A DNA stretch of 63,382 nt. Source: Chlorokybus atmophyticus. Its lineage: Eukaryota > Plantae > Mesostigma and Chlorokybus algae. Below, one piece after another: positions 2,336-63,382 of the stretch. Both the position numbers and the translations under genes were made by a program. Position 1 is the stretch's first letter; every line of letters begins with the position of its first letter. Where the stretch lies: contig RHPI01001168.1 of the NCBI GenBank assembly GCA_009103225.1, positions 469,053-532,434 on the forward strand, read 5' to 3'. Under the pieces are notes generated by a model. The model searched no databases. It had not been told where the DNA came from and saw nothing but the letters and a program-made list of their open reading frames with translations.

Positions 2336-4619
2336 ATGGCGACGGTGTTTGCCGGCGGCAATGCCGCCAACACCAGCAATGCACTGGGAGGACAAGAGCA
2401 CACTGTTGGCAACTCTTTCTGTGGGCCTCTGCGGCAGCTGGTTGCAAACGGGTACCACCCCGCCACCATCGCCTACATTGATGCTGACACTGGCAAACCG
2501 GTGCAGCTGTGGATCGACATCTTCCGGCGGAGCATTCCGGCCTTTAGGTATCAGTTGTATGCATGTCATATAGGCATTGTACTTGCAATGCATTTATCAC
2601 TCCCCAGTAAAGATCATGCAAGGCAGTTCATCAACACGCCAGGTGACATTGGTGCAAGCTGACCGTGTCATATGCCGCTCTCAAGTGTTTACGGCGTGCT
2701 ACGCAAACAGCTTGTCACCTCAACGGATGTCTGTTGTTGGCACAGTCCTTTACATGGGTTGCTAAAGTACATGCGCACATGCAGACGTTGGATAATTTCT
2801 GATAGCGTACCAATGATGCATGCAGGGCGCGGGCAGCTGCGGATGCTTCAGTGCCAGATGCAGGAAGGCTTGCGGATCAGTTTGCCATCAAGTGAGTGAT
2901 CAGCACACACACATAGTGCATTGGCAGCTTACCAGGGAGTGTCGCATGTTGCTGTGACTTGACAAGCTGCACTCGGCAGTTATGACAATATCATGCAAAG
3001 AGTCGAAAAGGATCCCCTTGCTTACGGAGAGCTGAACTGCATGGTACGGTACGCAAAGCATTTATACTGCTTGTGTGTATTCAATGTGATGACGACAAGA
3101 TTGCAATACTGGCACAATATATGCAGGCGTTGTGTGCACTAAGAGATAACTGCTTGAGAGACCTTGGCTTCCGTGACATCTTTGCTGTCGTCAAGGCAAG
3201 TCTGGAGGTGCAAGTGACTTTATGTCCCTTTTGCAAGCTGCATGCAGCTAAACAGCTATGACTTATGGCAGGCGGCGGAGAATGCTACGAGTCTCGAGCT
3301 CCTCAGTGGCGTCCTTTGCGAGGTGGACGCTGTGAGTGACGAGGGCGAACGCATACGCAACCTCGTGCGCGGTGTTTTCGCGGGGAATGTCTTTGACCTT
3401 GGCACCCCGGAGGTCCGTTGCAAAGACGTGACAACTGTGCATGTGGGCAAGTGTGCGTTGGGGTTGAGCGAATTGCTTGTTGTCTCGCGCGTGTGCTGTA
3501 ACAACTCGTGGTTACTAATGTCTTGAGGCTAGACTACTGTTGTCCGCAGTACGAAGATGTTGGTTTATATTGTCAGCATGTATCATACCAAGTTTCATGT
3601 GACAAACCATGCTGCATGGTTGCAGACAGCAGCATGGTTTGAGTCAGGAGCATTCTCCTTCGCGGACCAGCTCGGCAAGCTGTTGGCGCGGCCATGGCTG
3701 TACGACGATCTTGACATCTTCGCCCAGCATTGGCAGACCGCTGCACACTACCGAGAAGTGTGTACTTGTGCGGAGTTTAGTAGTGGGGAGCATGGCACAG
3801 TTCTCACCGCAAAACGCCCATCGTCGCAGGTCGTTATGTTTGTGGATAATGCTGGCGCTGATGTGGTGTTGGGGATGATCCCTCTGGCGCGAGAGTTTCT
3901 TAGGAAAGGCACCAAGGTACAGCGCTTGCTGTTCAGCTGATTGGCAGGAAAACGTTGTGTTTGCCCACAGCGGTTTGGAAACAGGTGATACTGGCGGCGA
4001 ACGCAGTGCCTTCCCTCAATGACATCACGCACGAGGAGCTTGTTGGCATACTGCAGATGGTGCGTAACATTGACAATGTCATCGCACGCGCCTTGGACGA
4101 AGAAACTCTCAGATGTATATCCAGCGGAAGCGACATGCCGGTGCGGGACTGCGGGCTGACTGCCACAACCATTGCTGGAATGTCTGCACCTATGCTTTAG
4201 AGAGTGCACCAGTATGTGTGTTTATTTTGGGCAGGTTCTGGATTTCAGACGGATTTCAAGTGAGCTTGTGGAGGCAGCTGGTGAAGCGGACCTTATCATT
4301 GTAGAAGGAATGGTAAGCTTTATTCTCAGTGCGCTGACCAAATGCTTGCCCATGCCAACCTTTTGCGTCACACCACATCAATGGCTGCAGGGTCGTTCCA
4401 TAGAAACCAATCTGTACGCGAAGTTCACCTGCGACAGTCTCAAGCTTGGCATGGTATGTTCCAACACCCAATTTCCACATGTTGTGCAATGCCATCGGCT
4501 TGTAGCGCACCGCATCAAATCATTGCTTAACGCAGGTGAAGCATCAGGAGGTGGCGGATGCGCTCAGGGGCCGCATGTACGATTGTGTATGCAAGTTTGA
4601 TCGGTCCTCCACCAAGTGA
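2336..4619 (+). CDS. DUF89/ARMT1-like damage-control phosphatase, At2g17340-like (PANK2 C-terminal-domain family), about 12 exons
   Basis: Manually spliced exons give WIDIFRRSIPAF, VPDA, LCALRDNCLRDLGFRDIF, LVRGVFAGNVFDLG, RPWLYDDL, FVDNAGADVVLGMIPLARE, ANAVPSLNDIT, EGMGRSIETNLYAKFTCDSLKLGMVKH, GRMYDCVCKF and a TGA at 4617-4619. These are collinear with Arabidopsis At2g17340 as I recall it. The start at ATG 2336 is tentative. Confidence 0.92.
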
Positions 4620-4826
4620 TGTGCTGACAAGCGCCATTCAGTTAAACTGAGAGGAGCTAGTGTTTAAAAGGTATTCTTGATTCTTGGTTCTAGCACACTC
4701 TGCTTGGTAGTGGATTGCACATTACATATCTTTCGTGGCCGCACGTATGTGGAAAGCAGCTGACCGGCAAAGGCAGCATGCATGGAAGCAGGCAACAATG
4801 CAATGCAGCACACCTAACCGACAGCA

Positions 4827-7030
4827 GCGACATGGGGGTTGTTATGATAGCGCTTCTGCCGGTGGTTCATGCAGTGGCTGGGTATCCCACCTGGGCGCAG
4901 GGCAAAGAATCGTTCTCAATTCAGAAACGTGAGATTTCATGACACTTTAATGTAGTGTTAGAAGATGTGAAGCGGGCGAGCTGGGAAGGTCTGCAGCTCA
5001 TCGACCCGAATGGCATTGAGCGTCGTGTGTTTCTCGCGCTTGCTAACTACATCAGCGACTTGCAGGTAGTGGGCATGCATGGTTGTAACCGGATGCAGCC
5101 TGCTGGCAAACAGTGCATGGAGGATGTTGTCAGTGGAGCATTTGAGTTTGTTGTGTTGCAGGAGACTGCCACACTCGCACGCACTGTGTCGGGCAACAAA
5201 ATATGACATCCTTGCGATGTTTATCTCGTTATTAAATCAGATCTGTGAGAGATGCATGAGGACTGGGAATTGAGAACCGAGGCTTTCGACACAACAGCAA
5301 TTACGTCAGTTGCGGGCGGACCTGTATAGCGGTGTTAGGAATGCACGCCAGACAGCCAAGGCTCTCCATGCATGTCGAGGAGGTAATGCTCAAATTATCG
5401 GCATTCGTGAGGATGAATGGCTTTCAGTGAAACCATGCAATGTGGTTTGGCAACCAAAAGCATTGTGGGGTTGGCGACGGTCGCATGTGCCGGGAGCTGA
5501 CTGCTACTGTCGTCTTGCCCCTGACGCAATGCATGTGCTGAGAGGCATCATTGACCACCTGCTTGCTGCTGTGTACGACGCATTCGTTCCTTCGCAGCGT
5601 CGCAGGTGCCGGGAGCTGACTACTACTCTCGTCTTGCCCCTGACGCAATTCATGTGCTGGGAGGCATCATTAACCACATGCTTGCTGCTGTATACGACGC
5701 TTCGAAGGAACGAATGCGTCTATCCACGAGACAGCTTCTGCAGGCCAGGCACGTCTTTGGTGTTGGTTTTTTTTTTGAACACAAAAGCCAACAACACGTG
5801 CTCACAAGCAGATGTGCACAGGCTCAATGCATGCAAGGCGTCTCTACGGGTTTTGCACTTCAAGGCACCCACAAGGACAGTAGATTTCTTCCTGTCCAAC
5901 CACTCCTTTCAGGTGGTGGGAAAAGTGGCGGTGCTGTAGCTGCTGCCGGTCCTTACGGACGGTTTGCTGCTCGACAGTGAGAGCGACGATTTCTTCACCA
6001 TTGTTGCCACATTGCTTGCCCAGTGGAACAAAAGGTTGCTCAAGGCGCATGAACACACAACAGAGACCCTGACCACAGCCGACAACGAGCTGGCTGCCTT
6101 CAAAGCTGCAGTGTTGCATCCGATACTGTCGTCATATTCTGCACAAAAGTCAGGTCGGAAGATCGAGAGGATGTTTCGGCTCACTTATTTTGGGCCGGCA
6201 ATTGTTAGCAGTGGAAATTCAGATTGGTTCAGCGCCAACCGCTTGAAGCAAACGCACGCCCAAAATATCAAAAGGTGGGCGCGTGGTGGCAACAACCGGG
6301 ACTTCTAGGCGCGTATCTTGAAGGCATGGAGCTGTGCAGAATATGTGAGAGAGGATGGCATGGTTGTGGATCACGAGATGCGCTCGGTCATGGCGCAGGC
6401 GCGGCAGCAGTGATGTAATGTAATGAAAAAGACGGACAGATTGCTACGGATGGATGTGCTGACAAGGAGGGAGTCCAGCCCGTATTAGAGCTAATCTGTG
6501 CGTAGCCGCCAAGTCGCCCTGAAGACTCCATTCGCCAACAAGCTGCCTGCCACCCTAGACAGCTGGTTGAGGAGGGAACAACTGGAGCTGACCAACGGGT
6601 GGCGTGCTGTTCGCGTGGTGAACGGAGGCGCAGCGGTGTACATGACATCAGGAGTCAGCATGGCGCGCGCAACTGGGATGTTCCATGGGCGGCCTTGATT
6701 CTCTACACTTGAGTTAGAAGGTGATGAGGACGGTGCGAACATGACGTGGTGGGCTTAGGCACTCCTTTTTTTGTGCGTGGTCGTGTGGGGTGGTAGCGGC
6801 GAGCGTGTGTGGAAGGAGGTTGTGTTTGTCTGCTGGTACATGAAGCAGGATGTGACGAGCGACACAAAGTGCATCGCTCTGGAATGGGAAAAGCGTCGGG
6901 GGGGTCCACATCTCGATGTCGTGACTCTGGAGCAAATAAAAGGCATTGTCCAGCTGCTCCCCATGTTTGACAAGGACAGTGCCCGTGTACAAGAGGGCAA
7001 GTATTAGGTGAACGTTCACTGCACTGTCAC
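4827..7030 (+). pseudogene. Plavaka-type (EnSpm/CACTA-like) transposase, copy 1; 5'-truncated, with frameshifts and premature stops
   Basis: IALLPVV...REIFHD.LNVVL.DVKRASWEGLQLIDPNGIERRVF.ALANYISD, HPCD, LAPDAMH, K.F.LTHF...AN..KQTHAQNIK and a C-terminal IKGIVQLLPMF...KY*VN. Nucleotide-collinear with 61500-63382. Confidence 0.85.
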
Positions 7031-7237
7031 GTAACACATGTACTTGTCTCACTACTCTGAGTTTGGAGCATATCAGTCAGTAAGGCATTACTAATCGTAC
7101 GCTAAGACTTCTGCATGTGGACGTGTACAATACCGGGCAGCTGTTACTGCACAACTGTCACTGCAATCGAATGTGCTATGCAACATTTAACGATCAGTCC
7201 GCCGTGTGGCATTAAGCATCAATACAGTGCACCACAC

Positions 7238-8965
7238 TCAAGCCTTATAGTTCCATGATACAGGAGGGTAGTCATAGCGCATATCCATTGTTTCAAGCAT
7301 GAGACGCCCTATGCACTCCGTTATTGCGGGAGGAACTGCATTCGCTATGGTAACGACCGAGGTCATCCATGGCACTCCCAGCGCTGTTCGCCATGCAGCA
7401 ATGCCGCCTCTGGTGCTTGGAAGGCCATAGACCGGGTACATTTGCTGTGGCGCGTTTAATGTCACAATTGTCTTCTTCGCGCTAGCGGACAGGTGCGGCA
7501 ATAGCAGTCCAACCGCCTTGCCCGCGTGCGAGCAGCGTGCTGGCGGGGTAGCTACCACTGGCTGTGTGCAAAACAGACGGTGTCGAAAAGTTGATAGGCC
7601 AAACATCGTGCCACAAATAGACAGATTGGGTTTGAATGAGGAAGCTGCTCCTGGCACATTCTCAATTACAAACTTGACTTGGCTTGCAAGCAGCAGATGT
7701 TGGACGAGCGGTATCATATCCTGGTGTCTCCAGGATGTGCCATGTGCCGCCCGTTGAGGTGCCAGAATAGCATCTGAATAGGCCTTGCATGGTGGACTGG
7801 CCCATATGAGCTCGTACTCGCTCAGCTCTCCTGCACTCAGAGTGCATACATCGCGGTGTATCAAGGGCAGCCGGTACTCAGAGGAGGGACTTATGTCCAT
7901 CCCGATCACGTCAAAGCCTGCGTGATATAGACCGACACTGGCACCGCCACCGTCGCAGAATAGGTCAAGTGGCCTTGGTCTGCGTGTGCGTCCAAGCTTG
8001 TTGTCAAATGGCGTGTATGTGGTCAAGGCTGATCGTGGTGCTGGTCAGGGACTAACAATGATGCCGTCTGGGCGTACTTTACGACTGACGTTCTCCCCTC
8101 CGGCGCGCAGATTATAGCGTGCCCCGTCAACTGATGTGTACGCGAATACGTTGTGCCCTTTGAAGTTGATGGTCTGTGGTCGATGACCGTCATCGAATAC
8201 TATACGGTGCTGCCCTGCACAGACATTTCCATTGCACCATGCATATATAATCAGTCCTTGATCTCGCACGCCACGAAGCGATGCTGACCTGACGCTTGCT
8301 TGAATGATTCCACAACGCCCGCATACCACTCTCCATCCAGCGGCCAATGCACCATGACATTCACACCGATCAGCTGCTCGCATCCCAACTTAACTGCGTT
8401 CCGCAGCTGAAGCAGTGCGCTGTTCAACGGTCGATGGTCTGCCGCCTCTACAGCGGCCAGGGGTAGGATCTGCCCACGCCCACATCGTGGAAGACTGCTC
8501 TAAATGCGACAGCAGCTTCAACATGCATGAAATAAGCATACGCCCAACATAACATGCAGTGATACGTCGCGGTCCACTCTGCCAAATTACCTCCACAGCA
8601 TCCACCACATGTCCACTAAACACATGTCCCAGTGTTGTCCATGTGAAGAAGCGCATGAAGCCCCTCGCCACTCGAAGCATGAGCGCGAGCACGATTCGCA
8701 CACGCACTGCACGCAATGGAAAAACTCGGGTTCCTTGCACAGCACTTTGCCGAGGCGGCAGCTAAACACATCGACATTGTGTGTGGTGTGATGCCAGCAA
8801 GCAGCATTAAAATCGTGGCACCCTGTCTGCACTCGCTGGCATTAGGTCAAGTGTGCTCGCATTTGCTGCCTACGATCATTGGCACATATGTACGCATTGC
8901 ATTGTGGGCACACCAAGCATGGTCTCCTAGGTATGGGGGATTCAACTGCTGCCGCCAACATCATG
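7238..8965 (-). pseudogene. spliced gene: Cys-rich region + Tudor-like domain + phage/bacterial-type C5 cytosine DNA methyltransferase
   Basis: MTase motifs: I LDLFCDGGGAS, IV WASPPC, VI IENVPG, VIII RHRLF, X ANAVPPAITECIG. The upstream ORF 8045-8383 is in the same frame as the MTase ORF, separated only by one TGA. Removing a GT-AG intron (8288-8215) gives LIGVNVMVHWPLDGEWYAGVVESFKQASGQHRIVFDDG, which is Tudor-like. Further upstream are CLVCPQC...RAHL and a Cys-rich exon. Confidence 0.8.
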
Positions 8966-9082
8966 CAAAGTAGGAATCGGCACGGCTGCCCACAACTGAG
9001 CGAGACTTTAGGGTATGGGCATCAATTTGGGGTTGCCAGCTTACGAACCCTACATGGGTCACACTTCAAGTGAAGCACGACT

Positions 9083-9190
9083 ATACCATGGACGATATTG
9101 CAGTACCATGCATGCATACTACATCAACATGAATGGTACTCCATATGTCAATGGTACTACGATACAAGGATACTCGCATACTACCACGAT
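9083..9190. promoter_or_regulatory. GTACCAT/ATGGTAC motif cluster upstream of the Tudor-MTase gene
   Basis: GTACCATG near 9103 and two AATGGTAC near 9132 and 9150. The same motif recurs at 13540-13615, 18585 and 60104-60304. Function is inferred. Confidence 0.4.
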
Positions 9191-9539
9191 CGTAGAGTAA
9201 TACTGTGCTGTTTGTCCATAGAACCCAGAGCGCTGTCCGAGTTTGTTGCTGTCAACCATGCTCTGAACTAGTGAGGTATGCAAGCCATGCACTGACTCAT
9301 GCGCCGGGCAGTCATCATACACATGTACAGCCATGCTTCTGACAACAGCAGATCTCGGGTGCATCATGCACCATGCTGCAACTATACATGTATTTACATG
9401 GTTCATAGGAAGCCAACACAAAACTACAATACATGCACAATTGTCATCAAGGCGGGGGCCAAATCACCGTTGACACGTTGGCGTCTTGCATCAGGCGTGA
9501 CTACCAAAACGGGTGAGGTTGCTTGCAGAAGGGACACGT

Positions 9540-12330
9540 TTATGGATTCTTTGATTTATTTGCCACAGTCTTCTCATGTGCTATAATGCAGACATGGCAC
9601 AACGCTTTCTTGCAACAGGGCGTCTCCCTATCCGCTGGCGGGGGTGGCTCTGCAATGCGACAAATCAGTACGCATGGTGCACGCGGGTGTGCAAGCTGCC
9701 TCTGCCACCAAACTCTGTTATCGCGTTGCAGGCGTAGCAACTCCCATCTGAATGGCGCAGCATAACGCTCCACTGCCTGCTCGATCACCTGACTACGCCC
9801 ATCTGCCGTCATGCACCACCTGCTGGGGCCTTAGTGCTCTCGTTCAGCATGCATTCATCCAGGCCCTCGACATGGCTGTCGTCACTCGTGTACTCCCCCG
9901 CATCGCCATTTTCTTCGAGCTTCCACAGAATCAGCTCGACGTGCCGTATGACATACAGCCACTGCCAGCCAAAGCATGCAAAGTATAGCTCAAATGTTTT
10001 TACTTGCCGCCCAGTATGTTTGCTCAGATAGTGGCACACATCTCGACCCACATCGATTGACATCGACAGGTACATCTGCTGCAGCAGGTCGAAGTTCTGC
10101 TCCGCGGATAGCTCTTGCACATTGCCGGGTTGCTGCGGCAACAACAACACCATCATATCGAGGACGGCGAGGGGCAACAACATACTACGGATGGCCATAT
10201 CGAGTTTGGGTTCCAACCATGGCCAATCCTAAGAGGTCTGTTTAGACCGCACTTTCCGCGTTTGCTCCCACTTATTGCATACTTTCGTCACCCACCTTGA
10301 GGCATGCCGCATGCGGTGATGCAGCGCATCTTGGGCGTATTGTAGGGCGATCAACTCCTTTGCACTACGAGTCAGCCCCTCAAAGCGTCTGCGCGTCGGT
10401 GCTTTGAGCTTAAGCAGCTCGTGCCGCACCGGCTGTCTCTCTTGACGATGCAGAGCAGCCACTTGACGCTGTAAACCCGCCTGTGCCTACTCAGGACACA
10501 CAGTCAGCCCCAATGAGGCTTCAAGGCGCTTCTTCTAACGTTTTAACGATGCCTCACCTTTCCTATTTTGGTCCTGTCAGCGTCCCTTGTTCCGATACCC
10601 CTTCTTCTTTGTTTTTTTTGTCAACCTGCACATTGTGACAGGCGCTCTCCGTAGCACTGTCACTCAGAGGAGGTAAGGAGTTATCTTGCTGCACAGCCTT
10701 GCGCTTGTTGGTTGCCTCCCGTTTCCCCACGACCTCATGCTGCTTCATGAGGTCGAGCATGAAGCCTTTGTCTTTCAGCGCAGCTTTCAGGACACCTCGA
10801 TCAATCTCTTTACCAACAAGACAGGCTGGAATCAATGTGGCAAGCTTAGAGGGAGAGGGCGAGCTACCGCTGCTTCTTGATGGAGATGCTTCCGGATGGT
10901 TAGAGTGCGGTGGCATGAGTCTCCGCAGCAGGAAGGGAGGGTGCTCAATTGTTATTGCGAGCATGTGGCTGTGGTTGAGGGGAGGCAGGATGTGCAGCAC
11001 ACTCAGCTACTTCTTGCCTAGCATACAAAGGCGAGGCCTGAGGCGTTGGCGCAGCACTCTGGGTTACAGCCGGTGGTAGCGGGGAATTGGCAACGCCATT
11101 CCGCCACTCTCCGATCAAGTCTGTTACCTCCGGTGGCACTTCATGCATAGGCCACGACCATTGTTCGGTGCTTGCAGGCTTGAGGAGCCAAAAGTGTGCT
11201 TTTGGCTCGTCATGAGCAGTATTGCCCACCACCAGAACTGAGTTGGGAGCTACTTTATTTCCAACCCAAACTGCGCTGCCGGGCCGTGGCACCCACTCCC
11301 CATGCTCGCGCTGAACGGTCACACAGACAATCAGCAAACTCAGCTTGTTGGCAAACATGGTCGTCTGTAGGTGCTCGACATACACATCTTTTCTCCGCAC
11401 GATCTGTCGCACCTTAGCCATGGCTATGTCAATGTTGCAATTGACATCAGCCAACATGGTCGCAGGCAGTTTGTCGTAATACTGCGCAATCTCTCCCGCG
11501 GCACCAGTGGCTCTGCAGAAGTCTAGGATTCTGCTCGCCACGCTTGCATCGACAGCCTTGGCGGTGATTTTGCGGAGAGTGTCCCTCCTGCCGTCGTCGC
11601 TCATGGTGTCCAGCATGGCCCAAAATCTGGGGCACTTGTGATCGAGCTGGGGCACTTGTGATCATCCAGGACACTTTGCGCTATGGATGGCCTGGCGCGA
11701 AACACACAATGGTAGAAGCAATAACCATCTGTTGGCGCATTGAAGTGGTCCCATGAGGCGAGCTGGCCACCTAGCATGACTGATGGCCGTATGCGGGTTG
11801 CGGCCAGCTCATCTGATGACTCGCTGACAGGTGGTGACCCCTGCTGCATGCGCATACAGCACTTAAATGGTGTGTCCAACTGTGGACGGCAAGAGTCACA
11901 GTGACTGACAAAGTACCTGAGTTTGGGGCAGACTGCCGGCTTCAACTTGCAGCGGGTGGGGTAAGGTAGGTGCAGAAGCCACATCGGTTGTTGCATTGTG
12001 CTGTGGTCTCGCCGGTTGCGGCAAGAAGGATTGTTGCCCCGCAATCACCGGTGCTGCTCGTGGAGGAGATGGCAGTGCATGAAGGCCTGGTGCCGCGGAA
12101 GGTGGTTGCGCTCTGGCTGCGAGGGGAGCATGAGCGGCAGGTGAGACCACTTGCATGCAGCAAGGGGGGCTGTATACATGACTCTGGATAAGATGGCTTG
12201 CAATGTTGCAGAGGACGAATATAAGCTTATGCAGTGCCTGACGCATTGTTACCAAGGCACAAGCGTAAAAAACAGCGACTTACCTCAATGGCCCATCGGC
12301 TGCATGGAACAGGGGAAGCTATGGGGGCTG
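9540..12330 (-). pseudogene. degenerate multi-exon gene containing an OTU-family cysteine protease (deubiquitinase-like) domain
   Basis: HFNAPTDGYCFYHCVFRA (OTU Cys box D-x-x-C) joins ORF 10945-11655 once a 20-bp insertion at 11627-11663 is removed. It continues ...YVEHLQTTMFANKLSLLIVCV...AHFWLLKP (His box). The flanking exons are low-complexity or Cys-rich, and gene limits are approximate. Confidence 0.6.
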
Positions 12331-13480: not shown

Positions 13481-13661
13481 CGTGTTTGGGTGAGTGCACG
13501 CTAACTCCCATTAGGGCTGATTGAGCAATGCCTCTGTCGAACCATGGATGGTACGACAGAGGCATTGTACGGCAATGGCTGGGGTGGACGAGAGATGCCT
13601 TTGTCGTACCATAAATGTTACGACACAACCATTGTTACCAATGGTTGTATGAAGCATGGAT

Positions 13662-14079
13662 TGTTGAAGAACTAGCATGCACATGTAGTTGAGGCAAGCA
13701 TGGATACACACGGACAGAGCTACCGCCACCAGAGCATACACAAGTCACATCACATTCATCTATTACAAGTTGTCCGCTGGTTCTTATACCAGCCAGTTAC
13801 ACACACGTCTACGTTTGCAAGCACTGCGTACGCTATACTCAGCCTTTTGACGCGCTCTAAGTTGTGTTGTCTTCCTTACAACCAGAGCTTTCCAACAAGC
13901 TCTTACACGCCTCATATAAGTAAGTATACGCGGAGATACCAAGCAGTTAGTAAGGCTCCAGTCTGGAGTCTGGTCCGACGATGCCATCTTGCTAAGTCCG
14001 GACCTAGTGCTCGTCCTTACGACCTTCTACTCCTGTGTGGAGGGTCGATGCTGATCGTATGTAGGAATGACTCTCAACA
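13662..14079 (-). repeat. copia 3' LTR
   Basis: TGTTGAAG...CTCTCAACA; I see two substitutions relative to the other LTR. Confidence 0.97.
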
Positions 14080-14121
14080 CTCCCACGCAAGCAGCTTGAC
14101 CTCCGACGCTTGCTCCTGTAG

Positions 14122-17118
14122 TCAAACACAGATGCCAAGTCCTGCACAATAAGTCTTGAACTGAAGTGGTGACAATGGCTTTGTCATGAAGTCTGCCAGC
14201 ATGCGTTCGGTGTTGCAGTACCGGAACTCCACCTCCTTTCTTGTGACTCTGTCACGCACAAAGTGATGCATGACATCAATGTGCTTTGTCCTTGCCGAAG
14301 CGATAGGATGCTTCAACAACTTGATGGCTCCTTGGTTGTCACAGTTGATGACGATGCACGCCATGGGGTGCTCCAAGTCTGCCATGAGCTTGCGAAGCCA
14401 GAGTGCCTCCTTCACTGCTGCTGCCGCTGCCATGTACTCAGCCTCTGATGTAGATGCTGCTGTTGTTGGCTGCAGCCTGCTGTTCCAGCTCACCACGCCT
14501 CCGTTCAGCTTGAAGACGTAGCCTGTAGTGGACCTCCTGCTGTTGAGGTCACCAGCAAAGTCCGAGTCGCAGTAGCCCTCCAACTCAGTGCTCCCGCTCC
14601 CAAACTTGATGCCAACTGTTGCGCTCCCAGCAACATAGCGTAGTACTCCCTTTGCTGCTCTCCAGTGCTCCATGCTCGGTGCAGACATGTAGCGAGCAAG
14701 TAATCCCACAGCATGTGCAACATCGGGACGTGTGCACACTGCCAGATAGAGCATGCTGCCTACCAGCTCACCATATGGATACTGAGCCTTGTCGAGTACC
14801 TCCTCATCCTTTGCCTTGATGAGGGCAGTGCCAAGTGCCAACGGTGTGGTCTTGGTCTTCGCTTCAGTGAGCCCAAACTTGATGACGAGTCTTCTCACCA
14901 TCTGCTCCTGACTGATCTTGATTTTGCGAGCAGCCCTGTCGCGCTCAATCACCATGCCAATGAACCACTTGGCCTCTTCAAGATCACGAACTGAGAATGC
15001 TTGCTGTAGAGCAAGTTTCGTCTCCTGCAGGTGGTGCACCTGCCTGGCGGTGATGATGATGTCATCAACATACACGAGCAGCCAGACCTTGTTGTCTGCA
15101 TGGATGAAGAGCCCAGGGTCTGCAGAGGATGCGGTGAAGCCAAGTGCCTCCAGCTCCTTGGTGAGCTTGATGTGCCACATACGCGGTGCCTGTCGCAGCC
15201 CGTACAGTGCCTTGATCAGCTTGCACGCTGTGCCTCTTTCCCCTTCTTCATATCCAGGTGGTTGCTCGATGAAGATCTCCTCCTCCAGCTCTCCGTAGAG
15301 AAAGGCAGTCTTCACATCGAGGTGATGCAGCTTGAGGTCCTCAGCGGCAATCACAGCTAGCAGTGCACGGAAGGTGGTATGCTTACTTGCAGGTGCAAAC
15401 ACTTCGTTGAAGTCCACACCTTCCTGCTGCAAGAAGCCCTTTGCCACCAGTCTTGCCTTGTAGCGCTCAATGTTGCCCTGACCATCACGCTTCACCTTGA
15501 AGACCCATTTCACTGGAATGGTCTTCACTCCTTGCGGTAACTGCTCCAGTGACCAAGTGTTGTTGGCATGGAGTGACGCAATCTCCTCGTCCATAGCACG
15601 CTGCCATTGCTCCGCATCTGGTGCTAACAATGCCTCCTCGTAGGTGCTTGGCTCCTCATTCTGCACACTGGCGACGTGTGCCTTGTGTAGGAAGTCAGGT
15701 GCCTTTCTCTCCCTCACTGGGTATCTCCGAGCTGCGTGCTCCTGCTGCAGGTGCGACTGCTTGTCTGCTACAGTGGAGTCCTGCTCACCCTTATCGTCGA
15801 TGATGGCCTTGCCTGTAGCCTCCACTGTTTCAGGATGCTCCGGCTGTGCTTCATCTTCAGGAAAGAAGCCTGCTTCTGGTTGTGATAATCCCTCGTGGAA
15901 AACCACCTCTCTGCTCACGATGATCTTCTGAGTGTCCTCGAGCAAGATCCTGTAAGCCTTGGAACCCGGTTCATAGCCAACGAAGATGCCCTTCTTGCTG
16001 ACCGGCTCCAGCTTGTGCCTGAGCTGTTTAGGCACTAGTGCATATGCCGTGCATCCAAACACACGCATACCACTCACATCTGGTGTGGCTCCATAGAAGT
16101 GCTCCCACGGAGTCTTCTGCTCTGAGCTCACCGGAGACCTGTTGCGGATGTAGTTGGCAGTGAGTACCGCCTCCTTCCACAGACTGTCTTCCATCTTTGT
16201 GTCATTGAGCATGGCTCGAACACGCTCCAAGAGTGTCCTGTTGAGGCGTTCAGCTGCTCCATTCTGCTGCGGGGTGTAGGGTGCTGTTGTCTCGCGGCGT
16301 ATGCCCTTGCTGGCGAAGAACTCCTTCAACTCCTTGTTGATGTACTCCCCTCCTCGATCACTCCTCATTGCCTTCATCTTGTTGCCAGACTGCGTCTCCA
16401 ACAAGGCCACAACTGTGCGCACAGCTCCAGCAACTTCTGACTTGAGCGTCGATGGAAAGATGATGGACAGCTTGCTGTAGTCGTCGAGGAATGTAGCAAA
16501 GTACCTGGCCCCTCCCTTCGCCACAATGCGCATAGGGCCACAGACATCCATGTGCACAAGCTCGCAAGGATGCTGACTGCTAGAAGAGGATGATGGGAAT
16601 GGCATAGCATGCTGCTTTGCAACCAGACATGGTTCACAAAGTGCACCTGATGCTGTCTTGAGTTCTTCTGTGCTGAGATGGATGCCCTTGACCATCTTCT
16701 CAGCGACAAGGCGAGTGAGGTTGACGTAGCTGAGATGCCCGAACCTTCGATGCCACAATGTTGGCGACTCCTTGTCCTTCACCATCATGGCTTGAATGTC
16801 TCTGTCTTGAGGCTGCTCCACGTGGTAGAGCCCTCCCGGATCAGCGATTCCAACCATGTGCACGACCCCATCAAGGATGACTGAGCAGCCACCCTTCCGA
16901 AATAGGATCTCCGCGCCTAAGCGCTCCGCAACCCTCACAGAGAATAGACTCGCAATAGCCTTAGGAACATGCAGGACGTTGCGTAACAACACCTCGCGTA
17001 GTGTGTTACCAACCTTGCACTGGAGTCGCACGTTGCCAACTCCCTCAGCCACCAGTACTTCACCACCGAAGCCCGCAACCTTGATTGTGGACGTCAGCTT
17101 CCTGTAGCCCTCCATCAC
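14122..17118 (-). CDS. pol: copia Pol (protease C-terminal part, GAG-pre-integrase, integrase, RT, RNase H)
   Basis: LWHRRFGH...CEPC zinc finger; VHMDVCGP...FLDDYSK...SDRGGEY...PQQNGAAER integrase; YKARLVAKG, LDVKTAFL and YVDD RT; YCDSDFAGD...SEAEY...CDNQGA...KHIDV RNase H. Confidence 0.97.
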   Translation of the reverse strand: MMEGYRKLTSTIKVAGFGGEVLVAEGVGNVRLQCKVGNTLREVLLRNVLHVPKAIASLFSVRVAERLGAEILFRKGGCSVILDGVVHMVGIADPGGLYHVEQPQDRDIQAMMVKDKESPTLWHRRFGHLSYVNLTRLVAEKMVKGIHLSTEELKTASGALCEPCLVAKQHAMPFPSSSSSSQHPCELVHMDVCGPMRIVAKGGARYFATFLDDYSKLSIIFPSTLKSEVAGAVRTVVALLETQSGNKMKAMRSDRGGEYINKELKEFFASKGIRRETTAPYTPQQNGAAERLNRTLLERVRAMLNDTKMEDSLWKEAVLTANYIRNRSPVSSEQKTPWEHFYGATPDVSGMRVFGCTAYALVPKQLRHKLEPVSKKGIFVGYEPGSKAYRILLEDTQKIIVSREVVFHEGLSQPEAGFFPEDEAQPEHPETVEATGKAIIDDKGEQDSTVADKQSHLQQEHAARRYPVRERKAPDFLHKAHVASVQNEEPSTYEEALLAPDAEQWQRAMDEEIASLHANNTWSLEQLPQGVKTIPVKWVFKVKRDGQGNIERYKARLVAKGFLQQEGVDFNEVFAPASKHTTFRALLAVIAAEDLKLHHLDVKTAFLYGELEEEIFIEQPPGYEEGERGTACKLIKALYGLRQAPRMWHIKLTKELEALGFTASSADPGLFIHADNKVWLLVYVDDIIITARQVHHLQETKLALQQAFSVRDLEEAKWFIGMVIERDRAARKIKISQEQMVRRLVIKFGLTEAKTKTTPLALGTALIKAKDEEVLDKAQYPYGELVGSMLYLAVCTRPDVAHAVGLLARYMSAPSMEHWRAAKGVLRYVAGSATVGIKFGSGSTELEGYCDSDFAGDLNSRRSTTGYVFKLNGGVVSWNSRLQPTTAASTSEAEYMAAAAAVKEALWLRKLMADLEHPMACIVINCDNQGAIKLLKHPIASARTKHIDVMHHFVRDRVTRKEVEFRYCNTERMLADFMTKPLSPLQFKTYCAGLGICV

Positions 17119-18038
17119 CTCCTTGTTTGGTGTGAGATGACGATCGCCGGATCGCAGCCAGAGTCCACCACCCAGAAAGCTGTGCCCGCCCTCGAACTGG
17201 ATGCAGTGAAGGTGACATGTTTCTCCTTGTGTTGGTGCTCGTTGCCGCTGTTGCTGGTGCTTGCTCTAGGTTGCCCCTGTTGTTTCTTCCTACAGTCCTT
17301 CACAATGTGCCCCTTCCAACCACACCAGTGGCATGTGAGGTCTTTGTGACGAGGATTGCCTGGCTTGTTGCCCTTGTACTTCTCTTCATGGTTGCTCTTC
17401 TTTGCGTGCTTGCCGGTGTAGAAGGCGACGGCATCCGCTTGCTCGTCCTTCTTCACAACCCTCTGCTCCACGGTGAGCAGCTTCGGTAGCACGTCGTCCA
17501 ACGTCAACTCCGATGATGACGTCTCCAGCAGGGTTGCGACGACCTCGTACTCTGCTGGTAGCCCTGCAACAATGGCCAGCACTACCTCCGTCTCCCCCAT
17601 GTTGTGGCCGACGTTGATGAGGTCCGCCCACAGCTCTCTCGCGCGCGCAACATACTTTGTGATGGGTTCTGCTGTCTCCTTTCTGAGTGCGCTGAGCTGC
17701 TTGCGTAGATGCAACTTTCTGGCATTGTTCTTGGCTCTGAAAACGGCTGATAGCTTTTCCCAAGCTTGTCTACCATCTTCACATGCAGTGAGCATGGGAA
17801 AGTGATGCGGTTTGCTGTTCAACACAAGCAAAGAGTGTGCTTCTGCTGAATGCTCTGACCACACAGTGTTCGCTCCTGGTGTTGGTGGTGGTGCCTTCGG
17901 ATCAACGTACTTCCACACCTTCTTGTGGATGAGCAAGGCCTTCATCTCCACGCACCATGTGTTGTAGTTGTCGGTGTCCAGCTTTGCAATCTGCCCCTTG
18001 TCGTAGGTCGCCTCCATCTTTGTCGTGCCTGCCTTCAC
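17115..18038 (-). CDS. gag: copia Gag plus protease active site, separated from pol by an 8-bp frameshifting insertion
   Basis: KLDTDNYNTW UBN2-type gag, CHWCGWKGHIVKDC zinc knuckle, WVVDSG protease motif. Confidence 0.95.
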   Translation of the reverse strand: MKAGTTKMEATYDKGQIAKLDTDNYNTWCVEMKALLIHKKVWKYVDPKAPPPTPGANTVWSEHSAEAHSLLVLNSKPHHFPMLTACEDGRQAWEKLSAVFRAKNNARKLHLRKQLSALRKETAEPITKYVARARELWADLINVGHNMGETEVVLAIVAGLPAEYEVVATLLETSSSELTLDDVLPKLLTVEQRVVKKDEQADAVAFYTGKHAKKSNHEEKYKGNKPGNPRHKDLTCHWCGWKGHIVKDCRKKQQGQPRASTSNSGNEHQHKEKHVTFTASSSRAGTAFWVVDSGCDPAIVISHQTRR

Positions 18039-18130
18039 TTGCAGCTGACACCCAAGGCTCTGCTACCTAACAAGCTACCGTAGTGTAAAACCACTATGCA
18101 CACGAGCTAGTCTCACACTCCTCAAGCGTA

Positions 18131-18146
18131 GTGTGGGCCCATAACC
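18131..18146 (-). promoter_or_regulatory. primer binding site (internal half-tRNA-iMet type)
   Basis: The minus strand reads GGTTATGGGCCC directly after the 5' LTR, the same PBS type as Drosophila copia and algal copia elements. Confidence 0.85.
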
Positions 18147-18564
18147 TGTTGAAGAACTAGCATGCACATGTAGTTGAGGCAAGCATGGATACACACGGAC
18201 AGAGCTACCGCCACCAGAGCATACACAAGTCACATCACATTCATCTATTACAAGTTGTCCGCTGGTTCTTATACCAGCCAGTTACACACACGTCTACGTT
18301 TGCAAGCACTGCGTAAGCTATACTCAGCCTTTTGACGCGCTCTAAGTTGTGTTGTCTTCCTTACAACCAGAGCTTTCCAACAAGCTCTTACACGCCTCAT
18401 ATGAGTAAGTATACGCGGAGATACCAAGCAGTTAGTAAGGCTCCAGTCTGGAGTCTGGTCCGACGATGCCATCTTGCTAAGTCCGGACCTAGTGCTCGTC
18501 CTTACGACCTTCTACTCCTGTGTGGAGGGTCGATGCTGATCGTATGTAGGAATGACTCTCAACA
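18147..18564 (-). repeat. copia 5' LTR
   Basis: Near-identical to 13662-14079. Confidence 0.97.
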
Positions 18565-47959: not shown

Positions 47960-50554
47960 GGTGTTGCTTGGTTGTGCAGGCTTCGAGTAGGAGTAGATTG
48001 GTTGCAAAGCATGTTGCTGCTCAATTACAGTGCGCCTAGATGGTCTCTGTAGTGTGCTTGTCATCAGTGCCTTTCGATGGGGTCAGTGACGCATCGCGGT
48101 TGATATTGAACATGTGCGCATTGGTTTGACGAACACCAGTTTGCGACATTATACCTGCGCATATGAGAGGAGGCGTTCTGCATGCTGGCGCAAAGTGCTG
48201 TGAGAAAACCTTCCGTGTGTTTGCCACCACATGGTTGCCAAAAACTGTCAACTAATTCTTCTTGAGATTGTACAAACAATGCGCAACAGTATTCCTCATG
48301 ACTTGTGTCATGCACAACATGCAAGCATATGAACATCACACATGCACCGTGTGGCGCTGCGTGGTGTGGTGCTGTGGTCTTAACGCTGCTTCGTAAGTCA
48401 CGCACGTGTTGCTGAGGGGCCCAGCGCACTGCTATTCTTTACTTGTTTGCTGCCTGACTAACTTGTCCAATGTGTGCACCATCACCTTCACCCAACCCCC
48501 GTCTACCTCACCAACCACTGCCTTTGTTGCTTGTATAGGCTTTCCGACAGATCAAAGTGCATGCACACGCACACACAGCAAGCCAAGAGCAGGCAGAACA
48601 GGGTGAGCAATGGATTCAAGCGGGGGCTTCACCAAGACAACTTAGCTATGTGCAAGTAGCTAAGTGCAATGCAAGGGGCGGGCAGGCAGGCAGGCAGGCA
48701 AAGCAGGGTAGTAAAAAAGCAGCAAGCAGACCTGTGCAACAGGTGCTTGTATATATCTGTGCGCTCGATAAGCAGCAACAGCAACAGCAAGGGGACAATT
48801 GCAACAACGCGCACAACAACCACCCTTCTCCTACCCACCCTACCCTTACACCACTACATAAGGGCCACGGCAATGGGGTAAAAAAGGCAAAGCAATAACC
48901 ATGCGACTATGTGCAGCAGCGGGCGGGGTGGCAGTAGTTGATGATACCTGCAGGGGAGGGAGCACCCAGTGGTTACTTTTACGCCCCTCTTCGCCCCATT
49001 GTGGCCCCTAGCAACCACAACCACGACCACGGCGCTAGCGTTACTACGACAGTTCTGAGTTCTCAGCTGCCATCAGCTCAAACGTCTTAGCCACAGTATC
49101 GTTGACAAACATACACCTATAAGGGGTGTTAAGTAAACACCCTTGCATTAGTACATTGCATCGCATGAGAACGTACGGATGCGGCATGCACGGTGGGGAC
49201 GTTGCTGGCGATGCCGTGCGGAAGCCATTGGCAGTGTTGAATGCTTCATGATGTTGCAGCACGGTTGCAGTCAATGTATCCGCCAAGCAGTACGTGGCTA
49301 TCTGCAATTCAGCTCGCAACAATGTTACATAGAACTTTCTGCAAATCACTGCAATTGTTTTAATTTCAAACACCCCCGCCGCCTCATCCACTTGCGTGTA
49401 CAACACAAACCCACGCTGCAACTCATGCAGTTGCTGGTGATCATCTGACGCTGGTTGACCAGCCACAGGTGGCATCACCTAATTGTATGTATGCGTATAC
49501 CATGTGTAATTAGACGTGCTTTGCAGTCATATTATGCTCCTTGCGTATAAACCGCATTGTATACTTACTTTGTGCACACCAGGCACTCACCCTCATATGC
49601 ACTTAACTACCGGGCTATACTACTACATCATCTGAATTATTACCTAAATCACCACCCCGTTAGTCCTGCAAGCATGCATGCATGCATGCATAGGCTGTCC
49701 TTGTATGGCAAATGCAAAGCACAAAAATGCAGCAATTGAGCACGCAGTAGCACAGCAGAAACAACTCGAATAGAGTGAAATGCAGTGCAGTGCTGTAGAA
49801 CAAAACACGCACTCACGCACCCACGCACGTAGACACAGATAGCTCCCAGAACTGCATGCATGCATAGCCTATTAATTAAATGCATGCTTCACAATGTATT
49901 CACCTGCCCACACGGGCGAGTGCTGCTCTTGTTCTGCCTGCCCTGTGCATCCTGACTAAATCACCTGTTCAGAAGCTGCCTGTTTAATGGATGATGCTCA
50001 CATGTGCCCCATGGGCCACGGGCCGTGGCATTGACTGCAAAACGTGGCATATGCACACTATCATGCCAGCAACATTCTGCGCACGCGTGATCAATTGTGC
50101 ACTTATTGTGGAAATGGAAGTTGCCTGCACAATAGCAATGCCCCATGACCTGGTATTGCGTAAATAATTGGCAAACATGGTGTGAGTCACTTGCACAAGT
50201 CGTAAACATCACCAAAACCACTGATTCATTGTGCACACAGCTGTGTGCACAAATGCACAACAGCAGCTCGCATATCCTGTACAAAGCCACATAAAAACAA
50301 TGTACTTAATACAGTATGTGGATCTGTACTTTACGAGTCCTGCCAGTCTACCTGCATGTCTATGCCAATGCTACGACTTCCTCCCTGTACGCGCATTGGT
50401 TTGCAGGCTGTGACATGATTGCCACGGCAAGCATTAATAATGACACTACAAAGAATGGGGTGCAGTGCACCTGACCAGACTTGCCTGGTGCAGTCCTGCT
50501 TGTTGCACGCAGTGAAAGTCAAAACTGTGCAACCAGTGCAGGGGCCCATGCTGG

Positions 50555-60103: not shown

Positions 60104-60304
60104 AGAGTTGTCAATGGTACGAACTGCCATTGCCATTGTACAAAGGTACCATTTCAATGGTACCTTTGTACAATGCCTAGACCTTTTGGCAAAGGCATCT
60201 TCGTGCCATTGAAATGGTTCAATCAGAATGTATATGTATATAAAAATATCCAGAGACTCACCCTGGACGTGCAATGGCTCGTTCGTACCATTATAATGGT
60301 ACGA
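60104..60304. promoter_or_regulatory. palindromic GTAC motif cluster upstream of the Plavaka transposase
   Basis: CAATGGTACGA; the hairpin ATTGTACAAAGGTACCATTTCAATGGTACCTTTGTACAAT; TCGTACCATTATAATGGTACGA. Confidence 0.5.
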
Positions 60305-60461
60305 CGGAGCCAGTGACTGGCGGCCAAGTTTCCCGCCTCTGGCATGCAAGGGTAGCGGTAGCGGTGGCGGTGGCGGCGGCGGCGGCGGCGGCGGGTGTGC
60401 GTGTTGCTGGATATGATGCAGGTTACATTGGCGACACCTGTGTCGACGTTAGTAGTGAGAT

Positions 60462-63382
60462 ATGGGAGTCCTTTGTCCGTATTGCCACATGCGCTTCGCC
60501 ACACGCAGCTCGGTCTACATGCACATTATTAGCAGCAGGGTGTGCAAGCAGATCAAGCTGTATGTCGGCCAGCGTCCATTACAGTACGATGCGGGTCATG
60601 TTGAACCCGGGAGTTCAATCCAGGATGCTCACATGCTTGATGCTGAAGGATTCCTCCAGGAGACACACGCACAGCAGCAACAGGAGGAGGAGGAAGTGAA
60701 CGAGGGCTTTCGATGTGTGCGTGTGCCTGAGAAACCTGTGGCACGCCAACATGGAAGTGGAGGCGTCCCTTCGCACGCGTCGGAATCCAGGTGGTATGGC
60801 TCGGAGCATGCTCTTGCAGTGGCATTCGTGCAGTGCAACAACGGCCAAGGCCTGTCGGCCTCCGACATGGGGCGGATCATCAAGTGCATCCGAAATGCAC
60901 ACTTCCTGACGGAAGAGCTCCAGTGGGAGACCGGTGTGCATGCGGCCAGCTACCTCCGGACCACGATTGCTTTCTCTCAGTCTGAGGTGTGTTCACGGTG
61001 TGCGGTGCATGTGCTTCAACCATCAGAGCCATGTCACATATGCACATGCGAGTGTGCTGCCGTATCAGAACTACGTGACGGCTGACCTGCGCAAGCCTGG
61101 AGACCCTGAGGATCAGGACATCTGCGTCACATATATGCCGGCCAAGGTCTGTGAAATGCAGTACCTAATGCAGTATCGATGCAGTATCTATTCTGAGGCC
61201 AGCATAGTAAGTAATGCTCTTGGTCGGAGCAGGTATGGCTCGCGCGGTTGTATGGCAATCCACATGCCGCCAATGGCTTCAATCTCCAGTACACTGGTGA
61301 CGAGCACAGCTTTGGCCATCCTTCCACGGGCGATTGGTGGAAGGATGTGGAGGTGGATTTGAGGAGAGAGGTGGGGGAAGCGTCCTACTTGGCGCCTGCC
61401 ATTCTGTACAGTGACAAGACCACGCTGGACAGCGCGGGCAAGCGCTCTGGCTACCCTCTGATGGCATCGCTTGCCAACTACAGTTGGGACATGTATGCTA
61501 GCAACATGGGGGTTGTTATGATAGCGCTTCTGCCGGTGGTTCACGCAGTGGCCGGGCATCCCACCTGGGCGCAGGGCAAGGAATCGTTCTCCATTCGGAA
61601 ACGTGAGATTTTTCATGACGCTTTGAATGTAGTGTTAGGGGATGTGAAGCGGGCGAGTTGGGAAGGTCTGCAGCTTATCGACCCGAATGGCATCGAGCGA
61701 CGTGTGTTTCCCGCGCTTGCCAACTACATCAGCAATTTGCAGGTAGTGGGCATGAATGGTTGTAACCGGATGCAGCCCGCCAGCAAACAGTGCATGGAGG
61801 ATGTTGTCATTAGAACATCTGAGTTTGTCGTGTTGTAGGAGACTGCCACACTCGCACGCACTGTGTCGGGCAACCAAACACGACATCCTTGCGATGTTTG
61901 TCTCGTCACCAAATCAGATCTGTTGGGAATGGATGAGGACCGGGAATTGAGAACCGAGGCCTTCTACACACCAGCAATACGTCAGCTGCGGGCGGACCTG
62001 CATAGCGGTGTTAGGAATGCACGCCAGACAGCCAAGGCTTTCAAAGAGCAGCACTCCATGCATGTCGAGGAGGTAATGGTCAAATTATCGGCATTCGTGA
62101 GGATGAATGGCTTTCCGTGAAACCAGGCAATGTGGTTTGGCAACAGAATGCACTGTGGGGTTGGCGACAGTCGCGGGTGCCGGGAGCTGACTGCTACTCT
62201 CGTCTTGCCCCTGACGCAATGCATGTGCTGGGAGGCATCATTGACCACCTGCTTGCTGCTGTGTACGACGCCGCGAAGGAACGAATGCGTCCATCCACGA
62301 GACAGATTCTGCAGGCCAGGCACGTCTTTGGTGTTGCTTTTGTGTTGAACACAAAAGCCAACAACACGTGCTCACGAGCAGATGTGCACAGGCTGAATGC
62401 ATGCAAGGCGACTCTGCGGGTTTCGCACTTCAAGGCACCCACAAGCACAGTAGATTTCTTCCTGTCCGACCACTCCTTTCAGGTGGTGGAGAAAGTGGCG
62501 GTGCTGCAGCTGCTGCCGGTCCTCGCAGACGGTTTGCTGCTCGACAGTGAGGGCAACGATTTCTTCACCATTGCTGCCGCATCGCTTGCCCAGTGGAACA
62601 AGAAGTTGCTGAAGGCGCATGAACACACAAGAGAGACCCTGACCACAGCCGACAACGAGCTGGCTGCCTTCAAAGCTGCAGTGTTGCATCCGCTACTGTC
62701 GTCATATTCTGCACAGAAGTCAGGTTGGAAGATCGAGAAGATGCATCAGCTCACTCATTTTGGGCCGGCAATTGTCAGCAGTGGACACCCAGATTGGTTC
62801 AGCGCCAACCGCATGGAGCAGACGCACGCCCAAAATATCAAACGGTGGGCGCGTGGTGGCAACAACCGGGACTACCAGGCACGTATCCTGAAGGCATGGA
62901 GCTGTGCGGAATATGTGAGAGAGGATGGCATGGTCGTGGATCCCGAGATGCGCTCGGTCATGGCGCAGGCGCGGCAGCAGTGCTGTAATGTCATGGAGAA
63001 GACGGACAAGTTGCTACGGATGGATGTGCTGACAAGGAGGGAGTCCAGCCCGTACTGGAGCGGATCTGCGCGTAGCCGCCAAGTCGCCTTGAAGACTCCA
63101 TTTGCCGACAAGCTGCCTGCCACCCTGGACAGCTGGTTGAGGAGGGAACAACTGGAGTTGGCCGACGGGTGGCGTGCTGTTCGCGTGATGAACGGAGGCA
63201 GCGGTGTACATGACATCAGGAGTCAGCATGGCGCGCGCAACTGAGATGTTCCATGGGCGGCCTTGGTTCTCTACACTTGAGTTGGAAGGTGATGAGGACG
63301 GTGTGAATGTGACGTGGTGGGCTCAGGCACTCCTTTTTCTGCGCGTGGTGGTGTGGGGTGGTAGCGGCGAGCGCGTGTGGAA
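60462..63382 (+). mobile_element. Plavaka-type transposase, copy 2, multi-exon, runs off the window end
   Basis: N-terminal CPYC...H finger; HPSTGDWW; ILYSDKT...GYPLMASLAN; REIFHDAL; FPALANYISNLQ|E; HPCDVC; LAPDAMH; KMHQLTHF; MEQTHAQNIK. The conserved Asp reads Asn here (AAT) but Asp in copy 1 (GAC). Confidence 0.9.

Follow-up and report, generated by a model that had tools for sequence, protein, structure and literature searches.

We found that the genome of the alga Chlorokybus atmophyticus carries the pseudogene of a three-exon gene of about 520 residues, which lies in a repeated unit together with a tail-to-tail Plavaka transposase and which was probably, when intact, a reader-guided methylation writer. 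We put the probability of this reading at roughly 0.7. The domain order is a Cys/His-rich region, followed by a Tudor domain of the PDS5/RDM15 type and then by a compact C5 DNA methyltransferase. The analysis covered one stretch of DNA of 63,382 nucleotides (contig RHPI01001168.1, positions 469,053 to 532,434), called the window here, and all coordinates refer to it. Frame and splice-site analysis placed the gene on the minus strand at 8964-7238, with three exons and two GT-AG introns (table 1). A first-pass annotation of the same DNA had put the start at 8965, whereas the ATG is actually at 8964.

Table 1. Features of the Tudor-methylase gene and of the Plavaka transposase copies, with positions in the window
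Feature	Position	Strand	Remarks
Exon 1	8591..8964	-	ATG at 8964; Cys/His-rich N-terminal region; from frame analysis
Intron 1 (predicted)	8500..8590	-	91 nt, GTAATT...ATTTAG; phase-0 donor at 8591/8590
Exon 2	8289..8499	-	Linker and N-terminal half of the Tudor domain; the 7DE9 match starts here
Intron 2 (predicted)	8215..8288	-	74 nt, GTCAGC...GTGCAG
Exon 3, first part	8048..8214	-	C-terminal half of the Tudor domain and linker; the 7DE9 alignment crosses the 8289/8214 junction
In-frame TGA	8045..8047	-	Splits the Tudor part from the methylase part in this copy
Exon 3, second part	7238..8044	-	Compact C5 DNA methyltransferase domain; gene stop at 7240-7238
Plavaka transposase pseudogene, copy 1	4826..6814	+	5' truncated at 4826; short ORFs; tail to tail with the methylase gene
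Tandem duplication of ~105 nt, spacing 119	5480..5704	+	Inside copy 1; absent from copy 2
Plavaka transposase copy 2	60274..63382	+	Better preserved; runs off the window end

The methylase part of the gene matched phrog_363 (E 1.7e-22, residues 8-241), while Pfam DNA_methylase (PF00145), which most relatives carry, stayed below its cut-off with 18.4 bits versus 22 and covered the N-terminal half only. This was the outcome of a profile check that had been named beforehand. TIGR00675 reached 13.3 versus a cut-off of 100.65. In a database search, more than 6000 homologous proteins were found, the best of them 40-47% identical, and the best 270 of these matches were all small virus, phage or metagenome enzymes. 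The canonical DNMT1, DNMT3, CMT, DRM and DNMT5 clades were not among the closest relatives in these best 270 matches, in agreement with the earlier view that the enzyme is not a DNMT1, DNMT3 or CMT. Furthermore, the family profile reached DNMT1 chains only at E 0.007, over 20 residues. An AF2 model of the methylase, built with a 15-sequence alignment, had a pLDDT of 79 and a pTM of 0.81, and Foldseek matched this model with a probability of 1.0 to DNMT3A/B, M.HaeIII and a prophage methylase (TM 0.5-0.57).

All of the methylase motifs quoted in the first-pass annotation were present in alignment A1. In motif IV (ASPPCK), the catalytic Cys is invariant, and the residue after Pro-Cys is Lys in place of Gln, at a position where the sister clade has His or Leu. 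Motif VI (IENV) and motif VIII (FRHRLF) are also present, and E122, N123, V124 and R148 are invariant columns of the same alignment. Motif I reads F-C-D-G-G-G, so that Asp replaces the first Gly of FxGxG. This change had been taken as a sign of a dead enzyme. The Asp is indeed there, but the position also varies between Gly and Cys in relatives (Cys in two of them), and the last two Gly, near-invariant in the family, are retained. Other departures at conserved positions of alignment A1 are Cys in place of the Glu after RHRLF and PPAI in place of PPAY. The differences at the RHRLF Glu, at PPAY, at FxGxG and at the position of D645 in the Tudor domain (see below) appear compatible with family traits and with decay alike.

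The odd residues after motif VIII and at PPAI would also suit intact copies that were not writers of 5-methylcytosine (5mC) on DNA at all, with a methylase that was inactive or acted on RNA and a protein that was a chromatin binder only. In addition, it is hard to tell for orphan DNMTs whether the substrate is DNA or RNA (PMC12344493). Nevertheless, the catalytic Cys, ENV and RxR are retained, the methylase differences between copies are mostly synonymous (see below), and the relatives are phage and virus DNA methylases. We regard a nonwriting protein of this kind as unlikely.

The gene that we read as a former reader-guided writer stands next to a transposase. Plavaka, of the EnSpm/CACTA superfamily, had been proposed as the source of the transposase and as the tail-to-tail neighbor of the methylase gene, and both proposals were supported: copy 1 adjoins the gene, and its DNA (4826-6814) is 90-92% identical to 61500-63382 of copy 2, in which homology to copy 1 starts at 61500 and 60274-61499 is assigned by ORFs only. 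The ORF 61248-61838 of copy 2 passes Pfam Plavaka (E 4.8e-22, 79 bits versus a cut-off of 26.3). Copy 2 also has an open C-terminal ORF of 375 aa at 62117-63244, for which no homologue was found at E 1e-5. Copy 1 itself gave a weak Pfam Plavaka match at 4955-5206; its identity as Plavaka rests on the Pfam match of the second copy and on the DNA identity between the two.

Copy 1 breaks off at 4826 and is probably interrupted by a Copia element. We found no terminal repeats or target duplications in the window. The candidate terminal motif CGTCGCAA has four occurrences in the window, no more than expected by chance, and none of them lies at plausible ends of copy 1. Similarly, the left flank of copy 2 showed no inverted match to the right flank of copy 1. 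With neither terminal repeats nor target duplications found, the case for the gene as cargo is built on its adjacency to the transposase and on their co-amplification.

All of 6000-10500 occurs in multiple copies in other DNA runs, with 249 and 102 contigs that are 85-99% alike, and single methylase positions are covered by 8-9 distinct contigs. For example, one 2521-nt contig spans 6075-8580, that is, the transposase tail, the methylase and the Tudor exons, with 146 substitutions and one indel, which lies in intron 2. This contig is another copy that links the methylase to the transposase, the lack of which would have spoken against the first-pass annotation. Besides an extra base near 8656, the sole indel within the gene in other copies is located after 8225, in intron 2. 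The gene was co-amplified with the Plavaka transposase. Synonymous sites were counted from the 40 differences listed out of 267: among the eight in exon 3 with the best support, seven fall on third codon positions (binomial P ~0.003) and six are synonymous, with one of the two replacements restoring the YPF consensus of the family, and one of the five differences in exons 1-2 is synonymous. The excess of third-position and synonymous differences in exon 3 suggests that the methylase part was once under purifying selection.

One rival reading is a host gene family that spread by segmental duplication or was domesticated and that lies near transposases without being carried by them. It would agree with the missing transposon ends in the window and with the fact that the methylase is beside a transposase at one place only in the window. 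However, it would have to accommodate many diverged variants of the whole 4.5-kb stretch with 8-9 distinct contigs over single methylase positions, the contig that connects the transposase tail to the gene, and a copy that decayed together with its transposase. For us, such a host family is quite unlikely, and we keep the reading of a gene amplified in one unit with its transposase.

The decay of this copy is plain. It is a pseudogene with two stops and one frameshift and cannot make the protein. The first-pass annotation had already called the copy probably dead because of the TGA at 8047-8045; this stop was verified, and two further lesions that had been missed lie in exon 1, namely a TAA at 8844-8842 and a 1-nt deletion near 8656-8660 relative to the other copies. 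A CGA in place of the TGA, which that annotation had suggested as its origin, was not among the differences listed between copies. At 8656/8660, contigs from all three DNA runs have one extra base, and once this base is restored, the frame enters the phase-0 donor at 8591/8590. In addition, there is a GC-to-AT bias over 6000-10500: this copy has T or A where the others have C or G at 141 sites, versus 42 sites for the reverse. We considered decay driven by 5mC as a methylation footprint and rejected it, because only 3 of the 24 transitions listed are in CpG context versus a background of 40%.

Several other elements were seen in the window. A young Copia LTR retrotransposon occupies 13662-18446, with 300-nt LTRs at 13662-13961 and 18147-18446 that are 99% identical, an open gag ORF at 17115-18038 and an open pol ORF at 14122-17118 (998 aa, all domains). 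It lies beyond the methylase gene and was probably inserted into the same Plavaka element. Its polyprotein matched database proteins at 49-57% identity, and the single match with a named source, a green alga, was 49% identical. Similar palindromes (CAATGnCTC..GTACCAT / ATGGTACGAC..GAGnCAnTG) were found at 13526-13634 and 60134-60315, the former about 4.5 kb upstream of the Tudor-methylase gene and the latter upstream of transposase copy 2. In this element family, they may function as subterminal or protein-binding repeats. On the other side, a host gene with short GT-AG introns, which encodes an ARMT1-like damage-control phosphatase (DUF89), is located at 3242-4600 on the plus strand, and the truncation of Plavaka copy 1 lies about 230 bases beyond the last ARMT1-like ORF (4600 versus 4826). 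Beside Plavaka copy 2, the minus-strand ORF 57396-58064 encodes a Tc5 transposase DNA-binding domain (E 2e-18) and represents a remnant of a pogo-type transposon. Another minus-strand ORF, 50446-51138, contains a partial Peptidase_M23 domain (E 1.5e-08). The minus-strand ORF 10945-11655 (region 10945-11800), a candidate hidden OTU protease, had no significant Pfam match.

The unity of the Tudor-methylase gene follows from its frame. As the first-pass annotation had observed, the two minus-strand ORFs 7238-8026 (262 codons) and 8045-8383 are in a common frame and the sole break between them is the TGA at 8047-8045; apart from this codon, the frame is continuous for 325 codons. Between the TGA that ends the Tudor part and motif I of the methylase, there is no ATG. 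Thus, the methylase cannot be a free-standing gene, and the two parts belong to one gene. A 74-nt GT-AG intron whose removal rebuilds a Tudor-like domain had also been proposed, and this was borne out: 8288-8215 starts with GT and ends with AG, and the spliced sequence matches the PDB entry 7DE9 with an E value of 1e-08. Likewise, the suggested Cys-rich upstream exon is present as a Cys/His-rich stretch at 8964-8591, joined through the second GT-AG intron of 91 nt at 8590-8500. For the pieces of this exon, we found no Pfam family and no Atlas lead. The neighboring ARMT1-like gene of the host has a GT-AG intron of about 67 nt (~3917-3983) in the same style as intron 1, which indicates that such short introns are usual in this genome.

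If a small Tudor protein and a separate methylase were adjacent and in frame by chance, the stop codon between the two parts in this copy would be explained. Nor did the RNA runs give a joint transcript: among the runs searched for the stretch, none of the RNA runs contain it, and it was met in DNA runs only, with contigs that share 0.13 of the sampled words. Two separate genes are nevertheless hard to reconcile with a methylase part that has no ATG before motif I, with a frame open over 325 codons apart from one TGA, and with a related copy that spans both parts without a coding indel. We regard chance adjacency as very improbable, and the evidence supports one intron-containing gene in which Tudor and methylase are fused.

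The Tudor domain was identified from the 62-residue spliced sequence. This sequence matched the Tudor domain of Arabidopsis RDM15 (7DE9) over 42 residues, and the alignment spans residues 2-43 and crosses the splice junction at about residue 31. The match runs unbroken across the join, which is good evidence that the splice of intron 2 is real. The next matches were 53BP1 Tudor chains at about 6e-4. In Pfam, PTM_DIR17_Tudor (4.5e-4), 53-BP1_Tudor (0.004) and Tudor_KDM3B (0.023) were found on the Tudor part, every one of them below its cut-off, and the Pfam Tudor score was 20.4 versus a curated cut-off of 27.2. Thus, the check on the Tudor profile that had been named beforehand returned a match through 7DE9 while the Pfam Tudor families remained below cut-off, and the proposed plant PDS5-like Tudor is supported as one of the PDS5/RDM15 type.

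RDM15 reads H3K4me1 through W616, Y623 and Y641 together with D643 and D645 (PMC8184781). In the 7DE9 alignment, the residues at these five positions of the window protein are W, Y, F, D and H. The aromatic cage therefore appears to be kept, but the second Asp (D645), which confers monomethyl specificity, seems to be replaced by His.

The first-pass annotation had also described the methylase as phage-type. This description holds for the wider family, in which 306 phage records, mostly from actinophages, include enzymes that are 34-37% identical at 87-93% query coverage and annotated as DNA methyltransferases, and in which 519 IMG/VR loci encode relatives. However, the phylogenetic analysis placed the gene elsewhere. 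In a maximum-likelihood tree of 74 rows, including 14 long-form enzymes and three phage enzymes, the window enzyme formed a long branch in a 21-row clade that holds all 14 long-form enzymes (SH-aLRT 90-92) and adjoined P0123, P0124, P0125, P0128 and P0130 (SH-aLRT 86), whereas the three phage enzymes fall across the tree from it. The tree had been named beforehand as a check, and the methylase grouped in it with the long forms that carry MBD or zf-CW domains and away from the actinophage enzymes.

In the sister group of the window enzyme, an MBD is inserted in the variable region, and this group has a QMYPVYG-type motif and a C-terminal DYPP in common with the window protein. Another member of the long-form clade has an N-terminal zf-CW. 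The nearest relatives have 340-390 residues with the MBD insert or the N-terminal zf-CW, and the window enzyme is without the insert of about 100 residues. These readers, an inserted methyl-CpG-binding domain or an N-terminal CW zinc finger, were noted at the loci L006, L012 (P0123, P0125, P0128, P0124) and L007/L008 (P0187). The presence of MBD or CW in the closest relatives indicates that virus-like small C5 methylases gained chromatin readers more than once. In a search of 1.84 billion cluster representatives with a query shorter than full length, no protein of the same architecture was found: none exceeded 47% identity, and no Tudor fusion was present in the best 150.

The contigs of the relatives are dense and intron-free, with eukaryote-type genes. 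For instance, one relative (L001) is accompanied by SNF2-RING and protein kinase genes, four others (L002-5), from marine TARA samples, by rhodopsin, and an MBD-inserted relative (L013) lies on a 29-kb contig with topoisomerase II, the ribonucleotide reductase small subunit, a U-box gene and aquaporin. Capsid or other viral hallmark genes were not seen on these contigs, so it is by inference that we call at least one of them giant-virus-like. An integrated giant-virus remnant instead of a transposon gene, which the virus-like contigs of the closest methylase relatives might bring to mind, is hardly credible given the spliceosomal-type introns of host size, the plant-type Tudor, the lack of any hallmark family among the subset of window ORFs scanned in Pfam, and neighbors that are a Plavaka transposase and a Copia element.

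Taken as a reader-guided writer on a Plavaka transposon, the intact copies are predicted to work in two steps. The Tudor domain would first bind a histone mark of the methyl-lysine type (H3K4me1-like), after which the methylase would write 5-methylcytosine on DNA nearby. In this way, the mobile element would possess a reader-guided methylation writer of its own. A clade of virus-borne enzymes that carry MBD and zf-CW readers was probably the source of the methylase, or shares it. It is a bolder proposal that intact copies are active, histone-mark-guided de novo 5mC writers carried by a cut-and-paste transposon and acquired from the giant-virus lineage with MBD/zf-CW methylases; we hold this proposal tentatively and think it somewhat doubtful.

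Several known systems resemble the gene in part. The RDM15/PDS5C Tudor (7DE9; PMC8184781) is its best sequence match; the window gene has W, Y and F at the cage positions and retains one Asp of the pair. However, D645, required for monomethyl specificity in RDM15, is His in the window gene, and RDM15 recruits methylation indirectly through Pol V, while in the window gene the reader is fused to the enzyme. Phage methylases of phrog_363, such as Mycobacterium phage Pukovnik gp82 and Gordonia phage Yakult gp45, have about 210-260 residues, the same motifs and 34-37% identity, but they are single-domain enzymes on the opposite side of the tree. DNMT5b of microeukaryotes has N-terminal Tudor or MBD modules (PMC9998398) and thus likewise combines a Tudor reader and a C5 DNA methylase in one protein; nevertheless, it belongs to another methylase family, is long, has an SNF2 ATPase and is host-encoded, not transposon-associated.

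Mobile elements with similar cargo are also known. In the red alga Bostrychia moritziana, giant Plavaka transposons contain accessory chromatin genes, namely PAG1 of unknown function, PAG2 with an N6-adenine methylase (PF01555) and SET, and PAG3 with a ParB-like domain and a 2OG oxygenase (preprint 10.1101/2025.02.11.637652). As in the window, the transposase travels with intron-containing genes for DNA or chromatin modification and most copies are degenerate, but the published cargo includes neither a Tudor nor a C5 methylase. Enlarged En/Spm families of 16-20 kb with extra ORFs have been described for Chondrus crispus in work cited in PMC6431247, and giant Plavaka repeats of Amoebidium carry other genes. 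Retrotransposons that captured cytosine methyltransferases were reported by de Mendoza et al. 2018, as cited in PMC12344493, and orphan virus-derived eukaryotic DNMTs are described as "lacking companion domains" (PMC12344493). In these cases, as in ours, a mobile element of a eukaryote is tied to a non-canonical C5 methylase whose ancestry is prokaryotic or viral; however, the carriers there are retrotransposons or viral insertions, and here the carrier would be a DNA transposon and the enzyme has a Tudor reader. In the literature that we searched, a Tudor-C5 methylase carried by a DNA transposon is not described, and the earlier statement that this architecture had not been described is upheld to that extent. 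The separate parts (Tudor-DNMT5b, giant red-algal Plavaka with chromatin cargo, and retrotransposon-borne DNMTs) are already published, and the combination would be new.

Transposons are usually the targets of DNA methylation. Exceptions are the retrotransposons that carry DNMTs, fungal Plavaka with TET/JBP, and red-algal Plavaka with an adenine-methylase/SET gene and an oxygenase. A DNA transposon whose cytosine methylase is joined directly to a reader of histone marks would extend these exceptions by a reader-writer module, and it would connect three gene pools: phage-type methylases, giant-virus MBD/zf-CW methylases and the plant-type Tudor. The dead copy in the window contributes only anatomy and evidence of past constraint. 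The design would be a compact natural one for mark-directed methylation, which is biochemically testable, and if the reading is true, a mobile element would shape the DNA methylation of its own or its host's chromatin.
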